This document shows positions 2,364 to 51,939 of a stretch of DNA of 64,000 nt, one piece after another; within the stretch, counting starts at the first letter, position 1; each line of letters starts with the position of its first letter. Source of the DNA: Anaeramoeba ignava BMAN. Lineage: Eukaryota > Protista > Anaeramoebae. Where the stretch lies: NCBI GenBank assembly GCA_028826165.1, contig JAPDFW010000044.1, forward strand, positions 310,001 to 374,000, in the 5' to 3' direction. The position numbers and the translations under genes are program-made. The notes beneath the pieces were generated by a model that was not told the origin of the DNA, made no database searches, and saw nothing but the letters and a program-made list of their open reading frames with translations.

Positions 2364-9156
<6,793 letters not shown>

Positions 9157-15803: not shown

Positions 15804-18491
15804 ATGAAAACAAATCTTTTCTTTTACTTCTTGATTATCAATATTTTCTTAATTCAATCAATTCAAAATCAACAAAAATCAATAAAATCATTAATAACTT
15901 CATTAGAAACAGAAACATCAAGATCTTATTCTTCTCTGAATGAAGCTTGGATTTGGAGTTTATTAGACGAATTTTCAGGTTTTTCACCACTTTTTGGATG
16001 GAGTGTTTCAATTTATGAAGATGTTATTGTTATTAGTGATTATTATGCAGCTCAAGTATTTGTTTACAGATATAATGGATCAAATTTGATTCAAGAACAA
16101 ATTTTGAGTGTATTGGTCCCATATTTTGGATGGAGTGTTTCAATTTATGAAGATGTTATTGTTATTGGTGATTATTATATAAATAAAACATTTGTTTACA
16201 GATATAATGGATCAAATTGGAATCAAGAACAAATTTTGAGTGAATCTGCCTCGAAATTTGGATATTCTGTTTCAATTTATGAAGATGTTATTGTTGTTGG
16301 AGCTTATAGTTCAGCTCAAGTATTTGTTTACAGATATAACGGATCGAATTGGAATAAAGAACAAATTTTGAGTGTATTGGTCCCATATTTTGGATGTTCT
16401 GTTTCAATTTATGAAGATGTTATTGTTGTTGGATCTTATGGTGAAAGTCAAGTATTTGTTTACAGATATAGTGGATCGAATTGGATTAAAGAACAAATTT
16501 TGAGTGAATCTTCTTCATATTTTGGATATTCTGTTTCAGTTTATGAAGATGTTATTGCTATTGGATCTTTTGGTGGAAATCAGACATTTGTTTACAGATA
16601 TAGTGGATCAAATTGGAATAAAGAACAAATTTTGAGTGAATCTTCTTCATATTTTGGATATTCTGTTTCAGTTTATAAATATGTTATTGTTATTGGAGCT
16701 TATGATTTAAAACAAGTATTTTTTTACAGATATAATGGATCAAATTGGAATAAAGAACAAATGTTGAGTGAATCTACTTCATATTTTGGATATTCTGTTT
16801 CAATTTATAAGAAATTTATTGTTATTGGAACTGTTGGTGGAAATAAAGCATTTGTTTATGAATTTAATTTCAATACACAAGCTAATATTCTTAATTGTTC
16901 ATCTTTGTTCTCATCATTTGATTGTTATTGGAATAAAATTGAATTTCCTTCACCTTTGGAATATCAAATTAATTATGGATATGATTGGATTGATATTGAT
17001 TCTCCAATTCTTAAAGATGAGAATGTTTATTATCAACAATTTAATTCTTCAATTTATGATAATATTACTGGAAATGAATATTATTCAATTCAAATCAAAG
17101 TTTGTGATTTATCATCAATGGTGTGTGGTGAATCTTCTTCTTTCATTAATTTAACAACAAAAATTGATTCAGTAAAAGATTTCCTATTATCAAATCCTTC
17201 AAATTATTCAATTAATATTAAATGGAACTATCCTAATGTTCGAATTGATGAAGGAATTGCACATGTTGATCATTATAATCTTTCTTATTTCAAACAATTT
17301 GAACCTGATTCAATATCTTCAGTTTCAGTTGATAATTCTTCACTTGATTATTTTTTGAATAATTTGGAATGTAAAACTGATTATAATATTTCAATTTGTG
17401 GATGTAGAACACAAGAATGTGAAGGAGATGATAAAGGAGAAATAATTGAATCATCAGTCTCAATAATATTTGCAGAAGTTACAAACTTAACATGTTCAAT
17501 TTCATATTCATTAGATATTAATTGTAGTTGGAATCAACCAATTAATTGTTCAATTCCATCTTATTATAATTTTAGTTATCAATCAATTTCTCAAAATGAT
17601 TCTGGAAATTATCAATCAACATTATTAAATCAACAATTCACAGCTCAAATTCCAAATCAAGAATATCAAATCAATATATCAGCATGTAATTCAAATGAGA
17701 AATGTGGAGATATTAGAACAACTTCAATTACAACTAATAATTTACCATTAGCTCCAACAATTTATCAAATAAATTCTAAAATTGAAGAAATTGAAATTAA
17801 TTTCACAAAATTAACCAATGCTAATAATTATTTACTTTCAATTGATAATGGAACAAATTGGCAAAAATTTACATCACTTGATTTAAGTGGAAATGAAGTA
17901 ATTGGAATCATAAATGGAATAGCAGGAAATATTGAATATAATATTTCAATTCGAGGATGTTCAGATTTAAATTGTGAAACACTATATTTAGGAGAACCAA
18001 GTTCAATAATTTCAACAAGAGCAAAATTAGGAAATATTACTTCATTAAATTGTTATTCATTAATTAATGGATTTGTTTGTACTTGGGATGGGTTAAATCT
18101 ATCAACAGGATTAAAAGGATATTCATTTAATTACAACTCAAAATCAATTTGTTTAACAAATTCATTATCACCTTATTATTCAATTTCAGGATTAAATGAA
18201 GAATATTATTATGAAATTTCAGTTTATTCATCAGCTGATCCAAATTGTTTATTTAATGAATATTCAGGAATTAAATCAACAATATCATTTGAATCTTCAT
18301 TTCAATGTGGTCCATATCAAGGAAATGATAATTCAACAAACACAACATCAATAGTTATTGGAATCCTTGTTCCAATTATTGCTATTTTAACAATTATTTT
18401 TGGAATTATTTTATTTAAGAAGAAAAGAAAAAAACAAATTATTAAAGAAATTATAAAAGAAAAAGAACTTCAAACTGATCTAAATTTTTAA
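15804..18491 (+). CDS. Type I membrane protein: signal peptide, 7 FG-GAP-like beta-propeller repeats, FN3-like domains, TM helix, short basic tail
   Basis: ~44-aa repeats FGxSVSIYEDVIVxG...FVYRYxGSNWxxEQILS; FN3-like W/Y/YxISI patterns; TM IVIGILVPIIAILTIIFGIILF followed by KKKRKK. Confidence 0.85.
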   Translation: MKTNLFFYFLIINIFLIQSIQNQQKSIKSLITSLETETSRSYSSLNEAWIWSLLDEFSGFSPLFGWSVSIYEDVIVISDYYAAQVFVYRYNGSNLIQEQILSVLVPYFGWSVSIYEDVIVIGDYYINKTFVYRYNGSNWNQEQILSESASKFGYSVSIYEDVIVVGAYSSAQVFVYRYNGSNWNKEQILSVLVPYFGCSVSIYEDVIVVGSYGESQVFVYRYSGSNWIKEQILSESSSYFGYSVSVYEDVIAIGSFGGNQTFVYRYSGSNWNKEQILSESSSYFGYSVSVYKYVIVIGAYDLKQVFFYRYNGSNWNKEQMLSESTSYFGYSVSIYKKFIVIGTVGGNKAFVYEFNFNTQANILNCSSLFSSFDCYWNKIEFPSPLEYQINYGYDWIDIDSPILKDENVYYQQFNSSIYDNITGNEYYSIQIKVCDLSSMVCGESSSFINLTTKIDSVKDFLLSNPSNYSINIKWNYPNVRIDEGIAHVDHYNLSYFKQFEPDSISSVSVDNSSLDYFLNNLECKTDYNISICGCRTQECEGDDKGEIIESSVSIIFAEVTNLTCSISYSLDINCSWNQPINCSIPSYYNFSYQSISQNDSGNYQSTLLNQQFTAQIPNQEYQINISACNSNEKCGDIRTTSITTNNLPLAPTIYQINSKIEEIEINFTKLTNANNYLLSIDNGTNWQKFTSLDLSGNEVIGIINGIAGNIEYNISIRGCSDLNCETLYLGEPSSIISTRAKLGNITSLNCYSLINGFVCTWDGLNLSTGLKGYSFNYNSKSICLTNSLSPYYSISGLNEEYYYEISVYSSADPNCLFNEYSGIKSTISFESSFQCGPYQGNDNSTNTTSIVIGILVPIIAILTIIFGIILFKKKRKKQIIKEIIKEKELQTDLNF

Positions 18492-19553: not shown

Positions 19554-22241
19554 ATGAAAACAAATCTTTTCTTTTACTTCTTGATTATCAATATTTTCTT
19601 AATTCAATCAATTCAAAATCAACAAAAATCAATAAAATCATTAATAACTTCATTAGAAACAGAAACATCAAGATCTTATTCTTCTCTGAATGAAGCTTGG
19701 CTTTGGAGTTTATTAGACGAATTTTCAGGTTTAGGACTTTTTGGATGGAGTGTTTCAATTTATGAAGATGTTATTGTTATTGGAAATTTGGGTGGAAATC
19801 AAGTATTTGTTTACAGATATAATGGATCAAATTTGATTCAAGAACAAATTTTGAGTGAATCTTCTTCATATTTTGGATATTCTGTTTCAATTTATGAAGA
19901 TGTTATTGTTATTGGAGCTTATGATACAAATAAAACATTTGTTTACAGATATAGTGGATCAAATTGGAATAAAGAACAAATTTTGAGTGAATTGGTCCCA
20001 TATTTTGGATGTTCTGTTTCAATTTATGAAGATGTTATTGTTGTTGGAGCTTATGGTGGAAAACAAGCATTTGTTTACAGATATAACGGATCGAATTGGA
20101 ATAAAGAACAAATTTTGAGTGTATTGGTTTCATATTTTGGATATTCTGTTTCAATTTATGAAGATGTTATTGTTGTTGGAGCTTATAGTTCAGCTCAAGT
20201 ATTTGTTTACAGATATAACGGATCGAATTGGAATCAAGAACAAATTTTGAGTGAATTGGTTTCATATTTTGGATGTTCTGTTTCAATTTATGAAGATGTT
20301 ATTGCTATTGGAGCTTATGGTGGAAAACAAGCATTTGTTTACAGATATAGTGGATCAAATTGGAATAAAGAACAAATGTTGAGTGAATCTTCTTCATATT
20401 TTGGATATTCTGTTTCAGTTTATAAATATGTTATTGTTATTGGAGCTTATGATTTAAATCAAACATTTGTTTACAGATATAGTGGATCAAATTGGAATAA
20501 AGAACAAATGTTGAGTGAATCTACTTCATATTTTGGATATTCTGTTTCAATTTATAAGAAATTTATTGTTATTGGAACTTTTGGTGGAAATAAAGCATTT
20601 GTTTATGAATTTAATTTCAATACACAAGCTAATATTCTTAATTGTTCATCTTTGTTCTCATCATTTGATTGTTATTGGAATAAAATTGAATTTCCTTCAC
20701 CTTTGGAATATCAAATTAATTATGGATATGATTGGATTGATATTGATTCTCCAATTCTTAAAGATGAGAATGTTTATTATCAACAATTTAATTCTTCAAT
20801 TTATGATAATATTACTGGAAATGAATATTATTCAATTCAAATCAAAGTTTGTGATTTATCATCAATGGTGTGTGGTGAATCTTCTTCTTTCATTAATTTA
20901 ACAACAAAAATTGATTCAGTAAAAGATTTCCTATTATCAAATCCTTCAAATTATTCAATTAATATTAAATGGAACTATCCTAATGTTCGAATTGATGAAG
21001 GAATTGCACATGTTGATCATTATAATCTTTCTTATTTCAAACAATTTGAACCTGATTCAATATCTTCAATTTCAGTTGATAATTCTTCGCTTGATTGTTT
21101 TTTGAATAATTTGGAATGTAAAACTGATTATAATATTTCAATTTGTGGATGTAGAACACAAGAATGTGAAGGAGATGATAAAGGAGAAATAATTGAATCA
21201 TCAATCTCAATAATATTTGCAGAAGTTACAAACTTAACATGTTCAATTTCATATTCATTAGATATTAATTGTAGTTGGAATCAACCAATTAATTGTTCAA
21301 TTCCATCTTATTATAATTTTAGTTATCAATCAATTTCTCAAAATGATTCTGGAAATTATCAATCAACATTATCAAATCAACAATTCACAGCTCAAATTCC
21401 AAATCAAGAATATCAAATCAATATATCAGCATGTAATTCAAATGAGAAATGTGGAGATATTAGAACAACTTCAATTACAACTAATAATTTACCATTAGCT
21501 CCAACAATTTATCAAATAAATTCTAAAATTGAAGAAATTGAAATTAATTTCACAAAATTAATCAATGCTAATAATTATTTACTTTCAATTGATAATGGAA
21601 CAAATTGGCAAAAATTTACATCACTTGATTTAAGTGGAAATGAAGTAATTGGAATCATAAATGGAATAGCAGGAAATATTGAATATAATATTTCAATTCG
21701 AGGATGTTCAGATTTAAATTGTGAAACACTATATTTAGGAGAACCAAGTTCAATAATTTCAACAAGATTAAAATTAGGAAATATTACTTCATTAAATTGT
21801 TATTCATTAATTAATGGATTTGTTTGTACTTGGGATATATTAAATCTATCAACAGGATTAAAAGGATATTCATTTAATTACAACTCAACATCAATTTGTT
21901 TAACAAATTCATTATCACCTTATTATTCAATTTCAGGATTAAATGAAGAATATTATTATGAAATTTCAGTTTATTCATCAGCTGATCCAAATTGTTTATT
22001 TAATGAATATTCAGGAATTAAATCAACAATATCATTTACATCATCTTCATTTCAATGTGAACCATATCAAGGAAATGATAATTCAACAAACACAACATCA
22101 ATAGTTATTGGAATCCTTGTTCCAATTATTGCTATTTTAACAATTATTTTTGGAATTATTTTATTTAAGAAGAAAAGAAAAAAACAAATTATTAAAGAAA
22201 TTATAAAAGAAAAAGAACTTCAAACTGATCTAAATTTTTAA
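19554..22241 (+). CDS. Tandem paralog of the FG-GAP propeller/FN3 membrane protein
   Basis: 895 aa, near-identical to 15804..18491 outside the propeller loops. Confidence 0.85.
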   Translation: MKTNLFFYFLIINIFLIQSIQNQQKSIKSLITSLETETSRSYSSLNEAWLWSLLDEFSGLGLFGWSVSIYEDVIVIGNLGGNQVFVYRYNGSNLIQEQILSESSSYFGYSVSIYEDVIVIGAYDTNKTFVYRYSGSNWNKEQILSELVPYFGCSVSIYEDVIVVGAYGGKQAFVYRYNGSNWNKEQILSVLVSYFGYSVSIYEDVIVVGAYSSAQVFVYRYNGSNWNQEQILSELVSYFGCSVSIYEDVIAIGAYGGKQAFVYRYSGSNWNKEQMLSESSSYFGYSVSVYKYVIVIGAYDLNQTFVYRYSGSNWNKEQMLSESTSYFGYSVSIYKKFIVIGTFGGNKAFVYEFNFNTQANILNCSSLFSSFDCYWNKIEFPSPLEYQINYGYDWIDIDSPILKDENVYYQQFNSSIYDNITGNEYYSIQIKVCDLSSMVCGESSSFINLTTKIDSVKDFLLSNPSNYSINIKWNYPNVRIDEGIAHVDHYNLSYFKQFEPDSISSISVDNSSLDCFLNNLECKTDYNISICGCRTQECEGDDKGEIIESSISIIFAEVTNLTCSISYSLDINCSWNQPINCSIPSYYNFSYQSISQNDSGNYQSTLSNQQFTAQIPNQEYQINISACNSNEKCGDIRTTSITTNNLPLAPTIYQINSKIEEIEINFTKLINANNYLLSIDNGTNWQKFTSLDLSGNEVIGIINGIAGNIEYNISIRGCSDLNCETLYLGEPSSIISTRLKLGNITSLNCYSLINGFVCTWDILNLSTGLKGYSFNYNSTSICLTNSLSPYYSISGLNEEYYYEISVYSSADPNCLFNEYSGIKSTISFTSSSFQCEPYQGNDNSTNTTSIVIGILVPIIAILTIIFGIILFKKKRKKQIIKEIIKEKELQTDLNF

Positions 22242-39539: not shown

Positions 39540-40300
39540 AAGCATAAAAAACAAAAATAAATTAAATATTTTATTATTAAAATATTTTACATAAAAATAT
39601 AAAAAATAAAAATAGATTTAATTTAATATTTAATTTATAAATTAATTTAAAAATATAATTTAATATTCAATTTTATTATTAAAATAATAATTTATTGTTT
39701 TAGATTTAAATATTTTATTATTTAAATATTTAACATATAAATATAAAAAATAAGAATAGATTTAATTTAATATTTAATTTATAAATTAATTTAAAAATAT
39801 AATTTAATATTTAATTTTATTATTAAAATAATATTTTATTGTTTTAGATTTAAATATTTTATTATTTAAATATTTTACATATAAATATAAAAATAAGAAT
39901 AGATTTAATTTAATATTTGATTTATAAATTAATTTAGAAATATAATTTAATATTTAATTTTATTATTAAAATAATAATTTATTGTTTTAGATTTAAATAT
40001 TTTATTATTTAAATATTTAACATAAAAATATAAAAAATAAAAATAGATTTAATTTAATTAAATAATTTTAAATAATTTAAAAATATAATTTAATATTTAA
40101 TTTTATTATTAAAATAATATTTTACAATTTTTAGATTTAAATATATTTTATTTTTAAATATTTTACATATAAATTTTAAGAATTTTCAATTTAATATTTC
40201 TTTTAAAAATATTTTAAATTAAAATTAAATTGTTTAAATTTATGTTTAAAATATTAATTTATTGTTTTAGATTTAAATATTTTGTTATTTAAAAATATTT
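39540..40300 (+). repeat. ~144-bp AT-rich tandem repeat array A (4-5 copies)
   Basis: aatagatttaa anchors at 39611, 39755, 39898, 40042; marker ttattgttttagatttaaat. Confidence 0.9.
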
Positions 40301-40596
40301 TCAATTTATTTCTTTATTAAAAAAATTTTTAAGTTTTATAATTGATTTGTTTCACTAATATTTTATATTTTATAAAATATTTTACAATTAATAATAATTA
40401 ATATATATTTTTAATTTTTATATATTTTTGATTTTCTTTTTTTTCAATTTAATCTTCTTTTTAATAATATTTTTAAATTAAAATTAAATTGTTTAAATTT
40501 GGATTTGTTTCTTATTTATTGATTTGAAGAATTTAAATTGATTGAAAGTAAATGAAAATTGAATTGAATTTTGAAAAAAAAATGAAAAAAAAGTTT

Positions 40597-43500
40597 TTAA
40601 ATGAAATAAGTCTCAAGTTCATCAACAACCCATTCATCATAAGAACCAGCTAAATAACTTTTAGCTTCATTTGTTCCATCGTGAATTCCATTAGGTAGAT
40701 TATAAGTAAAACCAAAATCTGAAAGAGCACTTTGTAATTTAGAATCTATCCAAATATCACCTATAAATATTTTAATAAAGATAAATAATTAATTTTAATA
40801 ATAATTAATAATAATTTAATTTAAAATTAATTTTATTTTAAATTGAAATAATAATATTATTTATTATATTAATATTTTGGATTATTTATTAATTTAATTT
40901 TAATTATAATAATAAATATTTATTAAATATAAATTATTTACCATCTATTTTAATAAAAATAAATAATTAATTTTAATAATAATTAATAATAATTTAATTT
41001 AAAATTAATTTTATTTTTAAATTGAAATAATAATATTATTTATTATATTAATATTTTTGTATTATTTATTAATTTAATTTTAATTATAATAATAATTATT
41101 TATTAAATATAAATTATTTACAAACTATTTTAATAAAGATAAAAAAATTAATTTTAATAATAATTAATTTTAATAATAATTTAATTTAAAATTAATTTTA
41201 TTTTAAATTGAAATAATAATATTATTTATTATATTAATATTTTAGATTATTTATTAATTTAATTTTAATTATAATAATAATTATTTATTAAATATATAAA
41301 TTATTTACTCTCTATTTTAATAAAGATAAATAATTAATTTTAATAATAATTAATAATAATTTAATTTAAAAATTAATTTTATTTTAAATTGAAATAATAA
41401 TAATATTATTTATTATATTAATATTTTGGATTATTTATTAATTTAATTTTAATTATAATAATAAATATTTATTAAATATAATTTATTTACTCCCTCTATT
41501 TTTAATAAATATAAATGATTAATTTTAATAATAATTAATAATAATTTAATTTAAAAATTAATTTTGATTTTTAAATTGAAATAATAATAATATTATTTAT
41601 TATATTAATATTTTGGATTATTTATTAATTTAATTTTAATTATAATAATAAATATTTATTAAATATAAATTATTTACCATCTATTTTTAATAAATATAAA
41701 TGATTAATTTTAATAATAATTAATAATAATTTAATTAAAAATTAATTTTTTTTTTATTTTAAAAATTTCCTAAAAAATAATAATATTATTTATTATATTA
41801 ATATTTAGATTATTTATTAATTTAATTTTAATTATAATAATAATTATTTATTAAATATAATTTATTTACATTCTATTTTAATAAAGATAAATAATTAATT
41901 TTAATAATAATTTAATTTAAAATTAATTTTATTTTAAATTGAAATAATAATATTATTTATTATATTAATATTTTAGATTATTTATTAATTTAATTTTAAT
42001 TATAATAATAAATATTTATTAAATATAATTTATTTACGTTCTATTTTAAATAAAGATAAATAATTAATTTTAATAATAATTAATAATAATTTAATTTAAA
42101 ATTAATTTTATTTTAAATTAAAAAATAATAATATTATTTATTATATTAATATTTTTGGGGGGATTATTTATTAATTTAATTTTAATTATAATAATAAATA
42201 TTTATTAAATATAAATTATTTACATTCTATTTTAATAAAGATAAATAATTAATTTTAATAATAATTAATAATAATTTAATTTAAAATTAATTTTATTTTA
42301 AATTGAAATAATAATATTATTTATTATATTAATATTTTGTATTATTTATTATATTAATATTTTGTATTATTTATTAATTTAATTTTAATTATAATAATAA
42401 ATATTTATTAAATATAATTTATTTTACATTCTATTTTAATAAAGATAAATAATTAATTTTAATAATAATTAATAATAATTTAATTTAAAATTAATTTTAT
42501 TTTAAATTGAAATAATAATAATTATTTATTATATTAATATTTTTGTATTATTTATTAATTTAATTTTTAATTATAATAATAAATATTTATTAAATATAAT
42601 TTATTTACAAAGCTATTTTAATAAAGATAAAAATTAATTTTAATAATAATTAATAATTTAATAATTTAATTTAAAATTAATTTTATTTTTAAATTAAAAT
42701 AATGATATTATTTATTATATTAATATTTTAGATTATTTATTAATTTAATTTTAATTATAATAATAAATATTTATTAAATATAAATTATTTACAAACTATT
42801 TTAATAAATATAAATAATTAATTTTTAAATTATAATTAATAATTTAATTTAATTTAATTTAAAAATTAATTTTATTTTTAAATTAAAATAATAATATTAT
42901 TTATTATATTAATATTTTGTATTATTTATTAATTTAATTTTAATTATAATAATAAATATTTATTAAATATAATTTATTTACTCTCTATTTTAATAAAGAT
43001 AAATAATTAATTTTAATAATAATTAATAATAATTTAATTTAAAATTTAATTTTATTTTAAATTGAAATAATAATATTATTTATTATATTAATATTTTGTA
43101 TTATTTATTAATTTAATTTTAATTATATTAATAAATATTTATTAAATATAAATTATTTACCAACTATTTTAATAAAATAAATAATTAATTTTAATTATAA
43201 TTAATAATAATTTAATTTAAAATTTAATTTTATTTTAAATTGAAATAATAATATTATTTATTATATTAATATTTTGTATTATTTATTAATTTAATTTTAA
43301 TTATAATAATAAATATTTATTAAATATAAATTATTTACCAACTATTTTAATAAAATAAAATAATTAATTTTAATAATAATTAATAATAATTTAATTTAAA
43401 AATTAATTTTATTTTAAATTGAAATAATAATATTATTTATTATATTAATATTTTGTATTATTTATTAATTTAATTTTAATTATAAATAATAAATATTTAT

Positions 43501-45333
43501 TAAATAAAAATTATTTACTAGCTATTTTAATAAAGTTAAATAATTAATTTTAATAATAATTAATAATAATTTAATTTTAAAATTAATTTTATTTTAAATT
43601 AAAAAAATAATAATATTATTTATTATATATTAATATTTTGGATTATTTATTAAATTTAATTTTAATTATAAATAATAAATATTTATTAAATATAAATTAT
43701 TTACTAGCTATTTTAATAAAAATAAAAATTAATTTTAATAATAATTAATAATAATTTAATTTAAAATTTAATTTTATTTTAAATTAAAATAATAATATTA
43801 TTTATTATATTAATATTTTGGATTATTTATTAATTTAATTTTAATTATAATAACAAATATTTATTAAATATAATTTATTTACTATCTATTTTAATAAAGA
43901 TAAATAATTAATTTTAATAATAATTAATAATAATTTATTTTAAAATTTAATTTTATTTTAAATTGAAATAATAATAATAATAATAAATATTTATTAAATA
44001 TAAATTATTTATATTTACATCCTCCAAAAATTGGACCAAAATATGAATCATAATAAATTGCATATTGTTCCATTCCTTTTTTAATTGTAAACTTCTCTGG
44101 TTTTCTATCTCCTTTATCATTTCTTAATGAAAAAATAAATGCATTTGAATCAATAATATTGCCATTACTATCATTTTTATCCTCTTCTCTCCATTTTGAT
44201 TTATCTTTTGTCCATCCAACTTGAGTAAATCCTCCAAAAATAAAATTATCTTTTGTTTTGATAATAACTAATGTTTTTCCTTTCCTATCAACTGCTTTAT
44301 GCCAATTTTGAGAATCAAATCCATCTCTTTTTGCTGAAAATCCTTTTTTCATTTTATAAAAAAAATCATTATCATTTATCCATTCTTGTAATTTCTTAAC
44401 ATATTCAATATCTTTAATAATTTCTGAATCTGATAGAAATCTTGATTTAAAAATGAATGAATTTTGATTTTCTTTTTGAATTAATTCAATGAATTCAATT
44501 AATTTTTCTTTATCATTTTGAAGTAGTTGTAATTGAATTAATTTTTGTGAAATTTGGTTTGGAATTATATCTTCTTTCAAAGTATCTTCAAGTTCTTGGT
44601 TTGTGAAATCAATAAATCCGATTTTACCAACAATATTTGAAATTTGATTTTGTAATTTTTCTTTTTCTTCTTTTTCAAGTTTTTGATTTTCTTTTTCTTG
44701 ATTAATATTTGATTTATGTTTTCCCCATTTTATTATTGATTGAAACATTTCAAATTCATTTGGTGGAATATAATCATTTGATAAAATTGAATTTAAATGA
44801 TTTTCTTCAAGTTCAAGAAAAAAAGGAGTTTTGATAAATTCTTCAAAATTTTCAAAAATAAATTTATAAGAAGAATCAAATAATTCATTTAAGTTCATTG
44901 ATTCAGATAATTTAAGAACATCAACAACAGTTTCAAATTGTAAATTCTTTTTGATAAATTTTGAAGAAATTTCAGTTAATTCATCAATTAAATATTTTGA
45001 TGAAAAAAATAAAATTCCAACTGCATTTTCTAAATTAATTTCAATTTTTCCTGAATAAAAATAATTCAAAATTGAAGATAGAATTGAACTTGAAACATCT
45101 TTTAGAATCATTTTATTTTCTTGATATTCTTTCATTTTTGAATTGAAAAGAGATTTAAAATATTGACTTCTTGAAGAAAGAATTGATTTATGAGTTTTAA
45201 ATGAAGTTTTGTTTTGTTCACAAATTATTTCAAAATCAAAATAACTTTCTTCTTCTTTTTCATTTTGGTTTTGATTTTGAAATAAATTTTTTAAATCATT
45301 TGAAAGTTTTTTTAAATTTGAATAAGTTTTCAT
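40597..45333 (-). CDS. BTB-BACK-TLDc protein; exon 1 45333-44019, micro-exon array, last exon 40760-40597
   Basis: BTB (FKTHKSILSSRSQYFKSLF), BACK and TLDc (FSAKRDGF, GKTLVIIKT, IFGGFT, AFIFSL, GPIFGG). The last exon DIWIDSKLQSALSDFGFTYNLPNG...YLAGSYDEWVVDELETYFI* completes the TLDc in phase 1. Confidence 0.9.
40761..44018 (-). repeat. Array of 18 ~180-bp GT-AG intron units separated by 17 variable micro-exons
   Basis: Each junction on the - strand reads ttattaaaatAG-NNN-GTaaataa. NNN in order: ata cta cta ttg ttg aga ttt cttt aat aat aac aat atg aggga aga ttt atg. Confidence 0.85.
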
Positions 45334-45439
45334 TTTCAATAAAAATTTGAAAAGAAAAAAATGAAAAAAATGAAAAAATGAAAAAAAGCAAAAAAATTAA
45401 AAAAAAAGCAAAAAAATTAGAAAAAAAGCAAAAAAAAAT

Positions 45440-46430
45440 GAAAATAGATTTAATTTAATATTTAAATTTATAAATCAATTTAAAAATATAATTTAATATT
45501 TAATTCCATTATTAAAAAAATAATTTAATGTTTTAGATTTAAATATTTTATTATTTAAATATTTAACATATAAATATAAAAAATGAAAATAGTTTTAATT
45601 TAATATTTAATTTATAAATTAATTTAAAAATATAATTTAATATTTAATTTTATTATTAAAATAATAATTTAATGTTTTAGATTTAAATATTTTATTATTT
45701 AAATATTTAACATATAAATATAAAAATAAGAATAGATTTAATTTAATATTTAATTTATAAATTAATTTAAAAATATAATTTAATATTTAATTTTTATGTT
45801 TAAAATAATAATTTAATGTTTTAGATTTAAATATTTTATTATTTAAATATTTTAAACATATAAATATAAAAATAAGAACAGATTTAATTTAATATTTAAT
45901 TTATAAATTAATTTAAAAATATAATTTATTATTTAATTTTATGTTTAAAATAATAATTTAATTGTTTTAGATTTAAATTATTTTATTATTTAAATATTTA
46001 ACATATAAATATAAAAATAAAATAGTTTTAATTTAATATTTAAATTTATAAATTAATTTAAAAATATAATTTAATATTTAATTCCATTATTAAAATAATA
46101 ATTTATTGTTTTAGATTTAAATATTTTATTATTTAAATATTTAACATATAAAATATAAAAAATGAAAATAGATTTAATTTAATATTTAATTTATAAATTA
46201 ATTTAAAAATATAATTTAATATTTAATTTTATTATTAAAATAATAATTTAATGTTTTAGATTTAAATATTTTATTATTTAAATATTTAACATAAAAATAT
46301 AAAAATGAAAATAGATTTAATTTAATATTTAATTTATAAATTAATTTAAAAATATAATTTAATATTTAATTTTATGTTTAAAATAATAATTTATTGTTTT
46401 ATGATTTAAATATTTTATTATTTAAAAATA
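45440..46430 (+). repeat. ~144-bp tandem repeat array B (~7 copies) between the divergent BTB-TLDc genes
   Basis: Same unit and orientation as 39540-40300. Confidence 0.9.
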
Positions 46431-46820
46431 TTTTGAAAATTGATTTTTGAAATTAAAATTTTATCTTTTTTTTGAATTAAATTGAATTAATATTAATTTG
46501 AAAATTTGTTTTAAAATTTAAATTTATTAATAATTTTTAAATTCCAAAAAAAAATTAAATTAAAAATTAAATTAAAATAATTTTCCTTTTTTTTAATAAA
46601 AAAATTAATAAAAAATAATAATAATTTATTAATAAATTAATTTAAAATAATAAATTAAAAAGAAAATTAAATTAATTATTAATTTAAATTTATTCTTATT
46701 TTTATATTTTTATTTATTTTCAAAATCCACTTTTTTTTTCATTTTTTTTTTTTAAATTTTTTTTTCATTTTTTTCCTTTTTTTTAAAAAACAACAAAAAA
46801 CAAAAAACACAAAAAACAAA

Positions 46821-49800
46821 ATGGATAATAATAATAACAACCAAATTGAAAATGCAAACCAAAATCAAAATGAAAATGAAATGAAAAATTTAGAAAAAAA
46901 AGTAACAAAAAATTTAATTAAAGATTATTCAAACCTTTTAAATGAAAATTCATTTAAAGATTTTTCAATTTTTGTTGAGAATAAATCAAATCATTTTGAA
47001 ATTAAAGTTCATAAATCAATTTTATCTTCAAGATCTCCTTTTTTTAATGAGTTTTTAAAAGAACAAAAACATCCTAATTCTATTTCTTTAAATCAATTTA
47101 ATAAAAAAGAAATGGAATCAATTTTGAGTTATATTTATTATGGAAATATTTCTTTTGAGAATCAAGAAAATCTTATTCAATTATTAGAAATTTCAATTTA
47201 TTTTAAATTAAATTTATTGAAAGAAATTATTCAAAAAAAAATTTCAAATTCAATTAATTATTCAAATTTTTTCCAATTTTTATTCCAAAATCGAAATTTA
47301 AATTCAAATGAAATTGAAATAAAATGTTTTGAATTAATAAATCAAAATTTTTCCCAAATTCAGAATAATGAGAATTTATTCAATTTAACTAAAGAAGAAA
47401 TTATCAAATTTATTCAATTTAAACAAGAAAAAAAAGAAATTTTTCAATTTGATTTTTTTCAATTTTTAAATGAATGGATTAAAAAAAGACTTAAATCATT
47501 AAGATTAAAGAAATCTGAACACCAAAAGAATGAAAAGAAAAGATTATTTCATTCTTTTTTTTCATTATTTGATAAAGATTCAATTTCAAAACAAGATTTT
47601 GATAAATTAAAACAATTTGATTTTTTTCTTCCAAATTCTTTTTTAATTAATTTTGAAAGAACTATTTTTCAAATTAAAGATCAAAAAAAAGAAACAAAAA
47701 TCAAAGAAAAAGATGAGGAAATTCAAAATCTTAAATTATCATTTGAGAAAAAAATTGAAAAAGGGGAACAAATACAAGAAATTCACAATCAAAAGGAACA
47801 GAAATTATTGGAGATTTTACCTCAATTTTCAGATTCAGAAATTATTAAAGATATTGAATATGTTAAGAGATTACAAGAATGGATAAATGATAATGATTTT
47901 TTTTCTAAAATGAAAAAAGGATTTTCAGCAAAAAGAGATGGATTTGATTGTGATAAATGGCATTCGATTTGTGATAATAAAGGAAAAACATTAGTTATTA
48001 TCAAAACAAAAGATAATTTTATTTTTGGAGGTTTTACTCAAGTTGGATGGACAAATGATAAATCAAAATGGAGTGAAAAAGATAGAAATGATGATTATGG
48101 ATGTATTCCAGATTCAAATGCATTTATTTTTTCATTAAGAAATGATAAAGGAGATAGAAAACCAGAAAAGTTTATAATTCAAAAAGGAAAAGAACAATAT
48201 GCAATTTTTTATGATTTAAATTATGGTCCAATTTTTGGAGGAGGTAAATATAAATAATTTATATTTAATAAATATTTATTATTATAATTAAAATTAAATT
48301 AATAAATAATCCAAAATATTAATATAATTAATAATATTATTATTTCAATTTAAAATAAAATTAATTTTAAATTAAATTATTATTAATTATTATTAAAATT
48401 AATTATTTATCTTTATTAAAATAGATTGTAAATAATTTATATTTAATAAATATTTATTATTATAATTAAAATTAAATTAATAAATAATCCAAAATATAAA
48501 TATAATCAATAATATTATTATTTCAATTTAAAATAAAATTAATTTTAAATTATTAAATTAAATTATTATTAATTATTATTAAATTAAATTATTTATATTT
48601 ATTAAAATAGATTGTAAATAATTTATATTTAATAAATATTTATTATTATAATTTATATTTATTAAATAAATATTTATTTATTTAATTATAATTAAAATTA
48701 AAATTAATAAATAAATAATCCAAAAATATAAATATAATAAATAATATTATTATTTCAATTTAAAATAAAATTAATTTTAAAATTAAATTATTATTAATTA
48801 TTATTAAAATTAATTATTTATCTTTATTAAAATAGATGGTAAATAATTTATATATTATTATAATTAAATTTAAATTAATAAATAATCCAAAATATTAATA
48901 TAATAAATAATATTATTATTTCAATTTAAAATAAAATTAATTTTAAATTAAATTATTATTAATTATTATTAAAATTAATTATTTATATTTATTAAAATAG
49001 ATTGTAAATAATTTATATTTAATAAATAATTTATTATTATAATTAAAAATTAAATTAATAAATAATCCAAAAATATAAATATAATCAATAATATTATTAT
49101 TTCAATTTAAAATAAAATTAATTTTTAAATTAAATTATTATTAATTATTATTAAAATTAATTATTTATATTTATTAAAATAGATGGTAAATAATTTATAT
49201 TTAATAAATATTTATTATTATAATTAAAATTAAATTAATAAATAATCCAAAATATTAATATAATAAATAATATTATTATTTCAATTTAAAATAAAATTAA
49301 TTTTAAATTAAATTATTATTAATTATTATTAAAATTAATTATTTATTTTTATTAAAATAGATAGTAAATAATTTATATTTAATAAATAATTTATTATTAT
49401 AATTAAAATTAAATTAATAAATAATACAAAATATTAATATAATAAATAATATTATTATTTTAATTTAAAATAAAATTAATTTTAAATTAAATTATTATTA
49501 ATTATTATTAAAATTAATTATTTATCTTTATTAAAATAGGTTGTAAATAATTTATATTTAATAAATATTTATTATTATAATTAAAATTAAATTAATAAAT
49601 AATACAAAATATTAATATAATAAATAATATTATTATTTCAATTTAAAATAAAATTAATATTAAATTAAATTATTATTAATTATTATTAAAATTAATTATT
49701 TATATTTATTAAAATAGTGAGTAAATAATTTATATTTAATAAATATTTATTATTATAATTAAATTTAAATTAATAAATAATACAAAATATTAATATAATA

Positions 49801-51648
49801 AATAATATTATTATTTCAATTTAAAATAAAATTAATATTAAATTAAATTATTATTAATTATTATTAAAATTAATTATTTATCTTTATTAAAATAGGTTGT
49901 AAATAAATTTATATTTAATAAATATTTATTATTATAATTAAAATTAAATTAATAAATAATACAAAAATATTAATATAATAAATAATAATATTATTTCAAT
50001 TTAAAATAAAATTAATTTTAAAATAAATTATTATTAATTATTATTAAAATTAATTATTTATCTTTATTAAAATAGATGGTAAATAATTTATATTATTATA
50101 ATTAAAATTAAATTAATAAATAATCTAAAATATTAATATAATAAATAATATTATTATTTCAATTTAAAAATAAAATTAATTTTAAATTAAATTATTATTA
50201 ATTATTATTAATATTAATTATTTATCTTTTATTAAAAATAGATGGTAAATAATTTATATTTAATAAATATTTATTATTATAATTAAAATTAAATTAATAA
50301 ATAATACAAAAATATAAATATAATCAATAATAATATTATTTCAATTTAAAATAAAATTAATTTTAAATTAAATTATTATTAATTATTATTAAAATTAATT
50401 ATTTATCTTTATTAAAATAGGTTGTAAATAATTTATGATTTAATAAATATTTATTATTATAATTAAAATTAAATTAATAAATAATCCAAAAATATAAATA
50501 TAATAAATAATATTATTATTTCAATTTAAAAATAAAATTAATTTTAAATTAAATTATTATTAAAATTAATTATTTATCTTTATTAAAATAGATGGTAAAA
50601 TAATTTATATTTAACAAATATTTATTATTATAATTAAAATTAAATTAATAAATAATCCAAAATATAAATATAATAAATGATATTATTATTTCAATTTAAA
50701 ATAAAATTAATTTTAAATTAAATTATTATTAATTATTATTAATATTAATTATTTATCTTTATTAAAATAGATAGTAAATAATTTATATTTAATAAATATT
50801 TATTATTATAATTAAAATTAAATTAATAAATAATCCAAAATATTAATATAATAAATAATATTATTATTTCAATTTAAAATTAAATTAATAAATATTTATT
50901 ATTATAATTAATATTAAAATTAATAAATAATCTAAAATATTAATATAATAAATAATTTATTATTTAATAAATATTTATTATTATAATTAAAATTAAATTA
51001 ATAAATAATCCAAAATATAAATATAATAAATAATATTATTATTTCAATTTAAAAATAAAATTAAATTTTAAATTAAATTATTATTAATTATTATTAAAAT
51101 TATTTATTTATCTTTATTAAAATAGTTCGTAAATAATTTATATTTAATAAATATTTACTATTATAATTAAAATTAAATTAATAAATAATCCAAAATATTA
51201 ATATAATAAATAATATTATTATTTCAATTTAAAATAAAATTAATTTTAAATTAAATTATTATTAATTATTATTAAAATTAATTATTTATCTTTATTAAAA
51301 TAGTTGGTAAATAATTTATATTTAATAAATATTTATTATAATTAAAATTAAATTAATAAATAATCTAAAATATTAATATAATAAATAATATTATTATTTC
51401 AATTTAAAATAAAATTAATTTTAAATTAAATTATTATTAATTATTATTAAAATTAATTATTTATCTTTATTAAAATATTTATAGGTGATATTGTGTTAGA
51501 TTCTATATTACAATCTGGTCATTCAGATTTTGGTCAGAGCTATAATCTATCTAATGGAATTAAAAAAGGAACAAATGAAGCTGAAAGTTATTTAGCTGGT
51601 TCTTATAATAAATGGGTTGTTGATGAACTTGAGACTTATTTCATTTAA
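46821..51648 (+). CDS. BTB-coiled coil-TLDc protein; exon 1 46821-48243, micro-exon array, last exon 51485-51648
   Basis: BTB (IKVHKSILSSRSPFF) and TLDc motifs. The last exon GDIVLDSILQSGHSDFGQSYNLSNG...YLAGSYNKWVVDELETYFI* is in phase. Confidence 0.9.
48244..51484 (+). repeat. Array of 17 ~180-bp GT-AG intron units separated by 16 variable 3-nt micro-exons
   Basis: aaaatAG-NNN-GTaaata with NNN at 48425 att, 48611 att, 48836 atg, 49001 att, 49183 atg, 49361 ata, 49540 gtt, 49718 tga, 49896 gtt, 50076 atg, 50242 atg, 50421 gtt, 50592 atg, 50771 ata, 51126 ttc, 51304 ttg. Confidence 0.9.
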
Positions 51649-51939
51649 AAACTTTTTTTTATTTTTTTTTCAAAATTCAATTCAATTTTCATTTACTTTC
51701 AATCAATTTAAATTCTTCAAATCAATAAATAAGAAACAAATCTAATTTTAAATAATTTAATTTTAATTTAAAAATATTATTAAAAAGAAGATTAATTTGA
51801 AAAAAATGAAAATCAAAAATATATAAACATTGAAAATATATATTAATTATTATTAATTGTAAAATATTTTATAAAATATAAAATAAGAAACAAATCAATT
51901 ATAATTTATTATTAAAAAATTATTTAATAAAGAAATAAA

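Follow-up and report, generated by a model that had tools for sequence, protein, structure and literature searches.

A tandem array of intron units separated by codon-sized spacers in a BTB-BACK-TLDc gene of Anaeramoeba ignava

What appears to be one long intron in a BTB-BACK-TLDc gene of Anaeramoeba ignava consists of 18 near-identical units in a row, each with the ends of a complete GT-AG intron of about 175 nt, and these are separated by 17 short spacers, mostly of 3 nt, which are probably one-codon exons. The gene, called gene A here, lies on the minus strand of a 64,000-nt stretch of DNA from A. ignava BMAN (GCA_028826165.1, contig JAPDFW010000044.1, positions 310,001 to 374,000), which is referred to as the window. 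At least 30 genes of this genome carry such an array at the same phase-1 site. Gene A is a degenerate member of this family, because reading through all of its spacers leads to a stop codon. The public protein model of gene A, P0001, joins the first donor to the last acceptor in frame (FGG-C-DIWIDS), a reading called skip-all below, in contrast to include-all, in which every spacer is retained.

Architecture of the array

The original prediction described an array of 17 micro-exons in gene A with the same intron unit and the same insertion point as in a paralogue, gene B, and this observation is confirmed, since every element of it is found in the sequence. Exon 1 ends with GGAGGAT, the intron starts with GTAAATATAAAT, and each of the 17 internal junctions has the form AAAATAG/spacer/GTAAATAA, until the last acceptor, AAAATATTTATAG, is followed by exon 2, which starts with GTGATATTTGG (Table 1). 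All 17 internal junctions thus have the AG and GT ends of a U2-type intron. Tandem Repeats Finder gives a period of 179, 17.5 copies and 87% matches. As had been predicted, only ATA, ATG and TTG are shared between the spacer sets of genes A and B. It is to be noted, however, that no two sampled arrays are collinear, so that a different triplet repertoire is ordinary between arrays and not peculiar to this pair.

Table 1. Features of genes A and B, with positions in the window
Feature	Positions	Strand	Description and basis
Gene A exon 1	44019-45333	-	BTB-BACK and most of TLDc; ATG at 45333; ends in phase 1 with TTT GGA GGA T; open reading frame identical to residues 1-438 of P0001 (100% identity)
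Gene A composite intron	40761-44018	-	18 tandem copies of a ~175-nt GT..AG intron unit plus 17 spacers
Outer donor	44002-44018	-	GTAAATATAAATAATTT; 6 extra bases (ATAAAT) compared with the internal donors GTAAATAATTT
All 17 spacers (candidate micro-exons)	40942-43885	-	Pattern census on both strands; each lies between AAAATAG and GTAAA
Spacer ATA	43883-43885	-
Spacer CTA	43705-43707	-
Spacer CTA	43519-43521	-
Spacer TTG	43339-43341	-
Spacer TTG	43161-43163	-
Spacer AGA	42982-42984	-
Spacer TTT	42793-42795	-
Spacer CTTT	42609-42612	-
Spacer AAT	42428-42430	-
Spacer AAT	42224-42226	-
Spacer AAC	42038-42040	-
Spacer AAT	41870-41872	-
Spacer ATG	41678-41680	-
Spacer AGGGA	41491-41495	-
Spacer AGA	41309-41311	-
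Spacer TTT	41122-41124	-
Spacer ATG	40942-40944	-
Last acceptor	40761-40778	-	TTATTAAAATATTTATAG; 6 extra bases compared with the internal acceptors TTATTAAAATAG
Gene A exon 2	40597-40760	-	GT completes the split codon (T+GT = Cys), then reads DIWIDSKLQSALSDFGFTYNLPNGIHDGTNEAKSYLAGSYDEWVVDELETYFI; stop TAA at 40597-40599; matches the C-terminus of P0001
Gene B	46821-51648	+	Divergently oriented paralogue; public model P0133 uses skip-all
Gene B exon 1	to 48243	+
Gene B array	48244-51484	+	17 units and 16 spacers
Gene B exon 2	from 51485	+

A family of arrays at one site

The arrays are not private to the two paralogues described in the original prediction. The unit gives at least 905 matches in the genome at about 96-98% identity, and about 27 clusters of these were inspected. 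All of the first 22 arrays collected, on 16 contigs, lie at the same site (GP.FG(G)N-array-NTGAT) in TLDc genes, and 23 genic arrays were sampled in all, while 19 further regions, including about a dozen arrays, were not read. The outer donor motif GGAN/GTAAATATAAATMAT occurs 30 times in the genome and 0 times in the reversed control. The other copies inspected form a related satellite in intergenic DNA (locus L023), with a unit of ~167 bp and no AG/GT, in an array of 5.3 kb, and the junction type of this satellite occurs inside one intron array. When the window's flanks were scanned for unit-like or satellite-like sequence, nothing above low-complexity background was found. A scan of metagenomes for the junction motif gave 0 hits, and no Rfam model matched at E <= 1 over window positions 40400-51800. 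The two Anaeramoeba genome papers do not mention the arrays, and no description of tandem intron arrays with one-codon exons was found in literature searches.

Conservation of the internal splice sites

How well are the internal splice sites kept? An anchor-based census that did not require splice motifs found 248 junctions, of which 241 (97%) keep AG-N(2-5)-GT, and 227 of these 241 (94%) have spacers of 3 nt. The G of AG is non-consensus in 2.4% and the G of GT in 2.0%, while the neighbouring C column is non-consensus in 35% and the three spacer positions in 45, 22 and 62%. The original prediction, that variation is focused on the exonic bases, needs a correction here: the spacers are the most variable columns, but the four C columns inside the unit also vary by 18-53%, and only the A/T columns (mostly 0-3%) and the splice-site Gs are invariant. 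The variable C columns look like recurrent mutation, as each carries three alleles and they show almost no linkage with one another. So unconstrained G/C sites do decay here while the splice-site Gs do not, and the internal sites therefore look selected. Junctions that have lost the donor GT sit in damaged genes: one lies in locus L013, which has broken exons, and another in locus L022, whose array has no detectable end. Two more, in loci L023 and L029, are deletions that removed both AG and GT and fused two units into one longer intron. An explanation of the similarity of the units by special homogenisation, which would make them more conserved than exons, was considered and rejected, since the flanking exons have a dS of only about 0.08 and differ mainly at non-synonymous sites.

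Reading frames and the state of gene A

All 11 arrays with only 3-nt spacers, gene B among them, are open on full inclusion (79 codons), and every one of their 2^n inclusion patterns is open, which in gene B means 65,536 of 65,536. In contrast, 8 of the 19 complete arrays, including that of gene A, contain a +-1 or +2 spacer, so that include-all is out of frame there. Five of these eight have intact exons in the stretches examined. As a criterion for coding micro-exons, a length that is a multiple of 3 and open in phase is thus satisfied in gene B and 10 other arrays and violated in gene A and 7 others, and this divided outcome does not settle the matter for the family. Spacers are not protected from indels, which occur at about 1.9% per base, at least as often as in the flanking intron.

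In gene A, full inclusion translates to FGG-YTTIVEISLIITI*GKIYG-DIWIDS and ends at TGA, and dropping the 13th spacer (ATG) opens the frame, just as had been predicted. If CTTT and AGGGA were homopolymer errors of 3-nt spacers, the T/AA joins (CTT/AAT, AAT/AAT and AAT/AAC) would give TAA instead. Only 21,856 of 131,072 inclusion patterns (16.7%) are open. The array of gene A and that of gene B have among the highest indel loads per unit of the arrays sampled (7.5 and 7.7 gap columns, respectively; L029 has 9.1 and the others 0.8-4.4), and gene A holds 4 of the 5 AA-starting 3-nt spacers seen anywhere. dN/dS of gene A against paralogues is about 1.05-1.1. This value cannot show that gene A is functional, and the NG86 method is unreliable in a genome of 82% AT.

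The interpretation offered in the original prediction is partly supported. Literal full inclusion cannot be productive in this gene, and the idea that this copy is decaying has support. That selective skipping with discard of non-productive products actually happens is not shown, and mis-assembly cannot be excluded for the +-1 spacers, although the architecture itself recurs from locus to locus.

Position in the protein

P0001 carries the BTB (PF00651), BACK (PF07707) and TLD (PF07534) profiles as precomputed Pfam matches. An AF2 model of its residues 310-492 has a TLDc fold, with a pLDDT of 95.6, and Foldseek finds 6r82, 8ar6, 4acj and 7obp at E values of 1e-8 to 1e-9 and TM scores of 0.67-0.77. 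In this predicted structure the split codon is in a 4-residue turn between two strands. The corresponding segment is 8-19 residues long in nearly all other paralogues (a few outliers reach 28), with a mode of 10, while skip-all gives 8-9. Thus the site tolerates insertions.

Do the spacer-coded residues appear in any protein derived from transcripts? The protein searches, which used exon 1 and P0001 as queries (the skip-all and include-all readings were only translated), gave a single EukProt hit, P0106, which comes from an intronless paralogue. Another protein, P0004, whose loop looked micro-exon-like, is also encoded contiguously, and further protein searches found only genome-derived A. ignava models. 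No transcriptome-derived protein of an array gene is in the protein database. Loops of intronless paralogues showed no NNT codon signature of descent from spliced arrays, but with only 4 cases (T 9, A 9, G 1) this comparison is uninformative.

Interpretation

The 3.26-kb interval is best explained as a tandem amplification of one complete spliceosomal intron (175 nt, GTAAAT...AAAATAG) together with 3 exon bases, at a phase-1 position in a tight beta-hairpin turn (FGG-x-DI) of the TLDc domain, in a young, fast-evolving BTB-BACK-TLDc subfamily. In this view, each unit is a working intron that is recognised and removed on its own, and each spacer survives as a one-codon micro-exon. The added residue would be set by the last base of the previous spacer plus the first two bases of the next, and pairing of a donor with a later acceptor would simply drop residues. 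Arrays would change by unequal crossing-over, with gain or loss of intron-plus-codon modules, and by point mutation. Gene A would be a degenerate member, in which a full-length protein needs skipping, most simply from the first donor to the last acceptor as in the public model; otherwise the gene is on its way to becoming a pseudogene. What the analysis establishes is the architecture, its recurrence across the genome, the conservation of the internal splice sites, the consequences for the reading frame and the location in a loop, whereas the use of the internal sites and the arrival of the spacers in mRNA are inferences. We give this reading a probability of about one half.

Several points weigh against it. 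There is no transcript evidence of any kind, as neither excision of the units nor the presence of the spacers in mRNA or protein was measured here. Poly(A) RNA-seq of A. ignava BMAN exists (BioProject PRJNA634776, named in PMC11550330) and was not analysed here. All 13 public models matched to sampled arrays use skip-all, but this is weak evidence, since short-read aligners and gene finders cannot place 3-nt exons, and such models cannot distinguish the alternatives. The N-T-N pattern of the spacers and their freedom from stops follow from descent from the first three bases of exon 2 (NTG), given that T is mutationally stable. Order-dependent stop avoidance is weak, with 3 observed against 5.2 expected (P=0.16), or 1 against 3.3 without gene A (P=0.10). 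No merged spacer of 6 or 9 nt was seen among 241, so there is no trace of intron loss through spliced mRNA. The indels in spacers and the satellite without splice sites are to be counted here as well.

If the triplets are spliced in, this would be the most extreme micro-exon architecture that we know of, with up to 22 consecutive one-codon exons in the sampled arrays, each flanked by clones of the same intron, in at least 30 genes, and it would show that intron duplication can act as a module for growing a protein loop. It would also be a clean natural test of how a spliceosome pairs identical, closely spaced sites: does it use the nearest acceptor, or the outermost pair? If the triplets are never spliced in, how are 17 perfect internal splice-site pairs ignored, and why are they conserved? 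Gene A is the informative member, because include-all is non-productive there and its isoform spectrum, compared with that of gene B, separates the models directly.

Alternative explanations

Another possibility, less likely but the strongest of the rivals, is that the array is a pure intronic minisatellite, always removed as one intron. The internal GT/AG pairs would then be inherited passengers of a unit that duplicated as an intron plus 3 exon bases, and the variability of the spacers would be neutral decay of G-containing triplets under extreme AT mutation pressure. Indeed, skip-all is in frame in 19 of 19 complete arrays and gives a canonical TLDc turn, with a loop length within the range of the family, and it is used in all matched public models. 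The last spacer is NTG in most arrays, like the first three bases of exon 2 (GTG/ATG/CTG), with the middle T as the stable base. The variation of the other C columns, the indels in spacers and the intergenic satellite fit this view too. However, the internal splice-site Gs are 15-30 times less variable than other G/C or spacer columns, the variable columns behave as recurrent mutation, and unused decoy sites should decay or be selected away. Internal donors carry the same GTAAAT hexamer as the outer donor, so nothing visible tells the spliceosome to ignore 17 nearer acceptors. In addition, at spacer position 2, G (42) far outnumbers A (5), while at T columns inside the unit the minor allele is A or C and never G.

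It might also be possible, though we consider it unlikely, that the arrays serve programmed combinatorial diversification, which is the strongest form of the original prediction: stochastic or regulated choice among the 18 donors and 18 acceptors would yield many loop variants from one locus, and NMD would remove the non-productive ones. The full openness of 11 of 19 arrays agrees with this, and so does the location in a hairpin turn that is hypervariable in length and sequence across more than 200 paralogues. The flanking exons evolve with dN >= dS (0.152 against 0.084 by NG86), and the family is very large, with at least 150 TLDc matches in the genome. The openness of all patterns is, however, a by-product of N-T-N spacers in phase 1 and fails in gene A and 7 other arrays, RNA and protein evidence is lacking here too, the caveat on NG86 ratios applies again, and co-transcriptional splicing of identical strong introns would be expected to give mostly include-all and not a broad mixture. 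A broader picture, also unlikely but not excluded, is a heritable system of intron-plus-codon cassettes, in which each module adds one residue to a recognition loop of a putative cullin-3 substrate adaptor, unequal crossing-over lengthens, shortens and reshuffles the loop one residue at a time, and variable donor-acceptor pairing additionally yields several loop variants per gene. This would be a splice-based way of making a hypervariable protein loop in a free-living protist, with gene A as a natural negative control whose products depend on skipping and NMD.

An assembly artefact, in which the array or its triplets would be consensus noise or a collapsed or expanded repeat, is very improbable, for although the assembly is of 2017-era Nanopore reads corrected with Racon, Nanopolish and two Pilon rounds, short-read polishing is unreliable inside units that are ~98% identical, all but one of the aberrant spacers differ from a common 3-nt spacer by +-1 in a homopolymer run (GGGA, GA, TTTG, CTTT and others) and unit lengths in gene A scatter from 165 to 201, the same architecture recurs at 23 sampled loci on 16 contigs and 30 genome sites match the outer donor exactly, spacer strings differ from array to array, substitutions at the spacers involve all four bases and not homopolymer lengths, adjacent identical spacers, including TTTG TTTG, indicate real unit duplications, and A/T columns are mostly 97-100% consistent.

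Comparison with known systems

Introners and introner-like elements of Micromonas, Aureococcus and Dothideomycete fungi (PMC3879977, PMC3609843, PMC4457414) are likewise many near-identical spliceosomal introns within one genome whose copies carry their own splice signals. They are, however, dispersed as single copies into unrelated genes, while every copy sampled here is in a tandem array at one homologous site of one gene family or in a related intergenic satellite. No terminal inverted repeats or target-site duplications were identified, though they were not searched for systematically. The predicted fold of the unit pairs its 5' end with bases about 150-162, but with z = -1.86 and 8 of 200 shuffles as good it is not convincing, and the identity of neighbouring spacers (CTA CTA, TTG TTG) is explained equally well by unit duplication, so that these observations decide neither way. 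In intron gain by tandem genomic duplication (the Rogers model; the potato RdRp case, PMC4974935), duplication at the DNA level also creates extra splice-site pairs, and the added copy can be spliced out without harm. In that model an exonic AGGT segment is duplicated once and yields one new intron, while here a whole existing intron plus 3 exon bases is the repeat unit, amplified up to 22 times in the sampled arrays.

Micro-exons, such as the neural micro-exons of 3-27 nt in animals, very short exons in plants and the micro-exon genes of Schistosoma, are exons of 3n length that add a few residues to surface loops, with symmetric phase so that any subset stays in frame. They lie between long, unrelated introns, whereas here up to 22 one-codon pieces, whose inclusion in mRNA is unproven, are separated by cloned copies of a single 175-nt intron. 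Recursive splicing ratchet points of Drosophila and vertebrates also have juxtaposed 3' and 5' splice sites inside a long intron, allowing stepwise removal, but a ratchet point regenerates a 5' splice site at the junction and leaves nothing behind. Here 2-5 bases lie between AG and GT, and the joins of exon 1 with a spacer (for example T/ATA) do not recreate GT, so the arrays do not fit this class, and stepwise removal would leave the triplets in the mRNA. Stwintrons and duplicated sister introns of Hypoxylaceae (PMC8469720) are recently duplicated spliceosomal introns with high sequence identity, but they are nested, as an intron within a splice signal, or dispersed, and not head-to-tail arrays separated by codons. 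Finally, AT-rich satellite DNA of nucleosome length shares with the arrays a period of ~179 bp and tandem arrays evolving by gain and loss of units, and the intergenic satellite of this genome is homologous to the unit, but the junction of the genic version is a conserved AG-NNN-GT and the arrays sit in frame inside coding genes.

Architecture of the array in gene A

The gene in question, here called gene A, encodes a protein with BTB, BACK and TLDc domains, and its first exon is followed by 18 head-to-tail copies of a unit of ~175 nt that starts with GTAAAT and ends with AAAATAG. These copies are separated by 17 spacers, and exon 2 then runs to a TAA stop codon. Tandem Repeats Finder reports a period of 179 with 17.5 copies. 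If the first donor is joined to the last acceptor, the product reads FGG-C-DIWIDS in frame. If every piece is joined, it reads FGG-YTTIVEISLIITI*GKIYG-DIWIDS, and removal of the 13th spacer (ATG) opens the frame. A paralogue in divergent orientation, gene B, has the same unit at the same point with 16 spacers, and only ATA, ATG and TTG are shared between the two spacer sets. The observation made in the original prediction, including its list of spacers, is confirmed. Positions of these and other features are summarized below.

Positions of the features described in the text
Feature	Position	Strand	Remark
Gene A, end of exon 1	44019	minus	ends ...TTT GGA GGA T
Gene A, outermost donor	44002-44018	minus	GTAAAT-ATAAAT-AATTT
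Gene A, last acceptor	40761-40778	minus	AAAATA-TTTATAG
Gene A, start of exon 2	40760	minus	GT GAT ATT TGG
Gene A, stop codon	40597-40599	minus	TAA
Gene B	46821-51648	plus	16 spacers
(ATA)n microsatellite	2788-5666		2.9 kb, about 958 copies
Coding tandem repeats (two)	16004-16858 and 19751-20605		132-nt period, 6.5 copies each
AT-rich tandem repeat	39562-40293		144/287 bp, about 5 copies
Satellite in locus L023 (G000:C137:161000-170999)	about 3390-8800 in reverse-complement coordinates	minus	5.3 kb, about 30 copies, period ~167 bp
Satellite-type junctions in locus L018 (G000:C114:3000-12999)	reverse-complement positions about 2523, 3050 and 3575	minus	three CCAC junctions

Exon 1 is 100% identical to a 492-aa NCBI protein of Anaeramoeba ignava carrying BTB, BACK and TLD domains, and that model splices the outermost sites (...GPIFGGCDIWIDS...). 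The window has a G+C content of 17.6%, while the genome of the strain is described as 80.65% A+T with introns of 91.86% A+T, and was assembled from Nanopore reads corrected with Racon, Nanopolish and two rounds of Pilon (PMC11550330). Other repeats are also found in the window. The two coding tandem repeats are near-identical and lie about 3.7 kb apart, and their flanking simple repeats match as well, which indicates a tandem gene duplication. The AT-rich tandem repeat just downstream of the 3′ flank of gene A is not detectably related to the intron unit.

Distribution of the arrays in the genome

How widely is this arrangement distributed? One unit used as a query gave at least 905 matches at about 96-98% identity on many contigs, typically 3 bases apart. 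Twenty further loci (numbered with the prefix L) were retrieved, and all 22 arrays, or 23 with a later merge, lie at the same site of paralogous TLDc genes, ...GP.FG(G)N, array, NTGAT(A/T)TT... The outer donor motif occurs 30 times in the genome and never in the reversed control, and because several sampled arrays have variant outer donors, the family comprises at least 30-35 genes. More than 150 other TLDc paralogues are uninterrupted at this site. No two arrays are collinear, so that the largely different triplet repertoire pointed out for genes A and B in the original prediction is the rule. In nearly all genes, the outer donor and the last acceptor each carry 6 extra bases compared with the internal sites. 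The internal junction was therefore made once and then amplified. In gene A and in L013-L032, each of these outermost sites looks like a live site next to a dead copy of the internal-type site 6 nt away, and this holds in nearly all family members.

Conservation of internal splice sites

Across 181 units from 22 arrays, the consensus is 175 nt with 1.9% mean non-consensus per column, and the only variable columns inside the unit are its four Cs, at 18-53%. A census anchored on interior sequence, which did not require splice motifs, found 248 intron-type junctions, of which 241 keep AG-N(2-5)-GT: 227 with 3 nt, 10 with 4, 3 with 2 and 1 with 5. Non-consensus fractions are 2.4% for the G of AG, 2.0% for the G of GT, 45/22/62% for the three spacer positions, 35% for the nearby C column, and mostly 0-3% for A/T columns. 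The C columns each carry three alleles and are essentially unlinked, which is what recurrent mutation of G/C sites under strong AT pressure would produce. So the idea that variation is focused on the exonic bases is only partly right, since every G/C-type position varies except the splice-site Gs. This exception is the most informative result here, because it argues that internal splice sites are kept by selection. The junctions that lost the donor GT support this: one is in L013, whose exons are broken, one is in L022, whose array has no detectable end, and two others, in L023 and L029, are deletions that fused two units.

Reading frames

Skip-all, in which the first donor is joined to the last acceptor, is in frame in all 19 complete arrays. 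Eleven arrays have only 3-nt spacers, and all eleven are open on full inclusion (79 codons), as is every one of their 2^n inclusion patterns; gene B gives 65,536 of 65,536. This follows mostly from the N-T-N shape of the spacers, whose position 2 is T in 78-82% and G in 17%, depending on the sample, and in phase 1 this T is the wobble base. Such a shape has a simple neutral origin. Exon 2 begins with GTG, ATG or CTG, and the last spacer is NTG in most arrays. The repeat unit is therefore an intron plus the first three exon bases, with the Gs decaying and the T stable.

Is there any sign that the spacers are constrained as codons? An order-dependent test is weak: there are 3 stop-forming joins in 226, against 5.2 expected on shuffling within arrays (P=0.16) or 6.9 across arrays (P=0.05), and without gene A it is 1 against 3.3 (P=0.10). 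One residual oddity favours constraint: at spacer position 2, G (42) far outnumbers A (5), while T columns inside the unit mutate to A or C and never to G. Against constraint, 8 of 19 arrays carry a +-1 or +2 spacer, five of these have intact exons in the stretches examined, and the indel density in spacers is not lower than in the flanking intron. All but one of these aberrant spacers are homopolymer +-1 changes, and the assembly method makes such errors plausible inside near-identical repeats. Three array genes, L013, L029 and L032, have frameshifted or truncated exons as well as a 4-nt spacer, that is, 3 of the 8 arrays with aberrant spacers against 0 of the 11 without (Fisher exact P about 0.06, calculated by hand), and they are either pseudogenes or regions of local indel error. 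No 6- or 9-nt spacer exists, so there is no sign of intron loss through spliced mRNA.

In gene A, the units have among the highest indel loads, 7.5 gap columns per unit against 7.7 for gene B, 9.1 for L029 and 0.8-4.4 for the others, and unit lengths run from 165 to 201. Gene A also holds 4 of the 5 AA-starting 3-nt spacers seen anywhere, one 4-nt spacer and the only 5-nt spacer, and only 16.7% of its inclusion patterns are open. As claimed in the original prediction, include-all is non-productive, whichever way the +-1 question falls: as assembled there is a TGA at the ATG/AGGGA join, and if the long spacers were really 3 nt, the T/AA joins would give TAA. As assembled, the AAT AAT AAC AAT block lies in the stretch shifted by CTTT, where it reads TTA ATA ATA ACA ATA without a stop, although this is a single cluster and carries no statistical weight.

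Protein context

An AlphaFold model of residues 310-492 (pLDDT 95.6) has the TLDc fold, and in this model the split codon (C130 of the model) lies in a four-residue turn between strands 126-127 and 132-134. Between GP.FG and the LQ.G motif, other paralogues mostly have 8-19 residues, with a few outliers up to 28 and a mode of 10. Skip-all gives 8-9, which is short but within range. Flanking exons of 13 intact array genes, compared over 40 codons before and 53 codons after the array, are 87% identical, with dN (0.152) exceeding dS (0.084), although these NG86 values should be read cautiously at this base composition. The family is therefore young and changes mainly at the protein level, and this also explains why intron units look better conserved than exons. 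Variable residues cluster at a few positions between invariant motifs (FSLRNDKGDRKPEKF, YNLPNGI, SYLAGS, VDELETYFI).

Possible interpretations and a related satellite

What, then, are these arrays? The most likely reading, to which we give a probability of about 0.5, is that the units are individually functional introns and that the spacers are one-codon exons in the family at large, while gene A is a degenerate copy that yields a full-length protein only by skipping, or is decaying. The arrays and their reading frames are seen directly in the sequence, whereas use of the internal sites and survival of the spacers as exons are inferred, as RNA was not examined and no transcript-derived protein of an array gene is found in the databases. 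The public models do not help here because 3-nt exons are invisible to standard aligners and gene finders, and no description of the architecture was found in the papers searched. The interpretation offered in the original prediction, selective skipping, or decay or mis-assembly of this copy, is supported only in part.

The main rival, less likely but possible, is a purely intronic minisatellite that is always removed whole. It explains the N-T-N rule, the indels, the public models and the related intergenic satellite described below, but it does not explain the conservation of 17 decoy splice-site pairs. Programmed combinatorial diversity is unlikely and an assembly artefact very unlikely, though both remain possible.

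The intron unit can be compared with a satellite of the same genome. In L023, an intergenic tandem array starts about 200 nt after the stop codon of an array-bearing TLDc gene. Its interior is homologous to the intron unit, while its junction reads ...AAAATATTTATTCCACTTTTT..., with no AG/GT, so the intron unit has a satellite relative outside genes. In L018, satellite-type junctions are interspersed among intron-type junctions inside one genic array, and this suggests exchange between the two repeat types.
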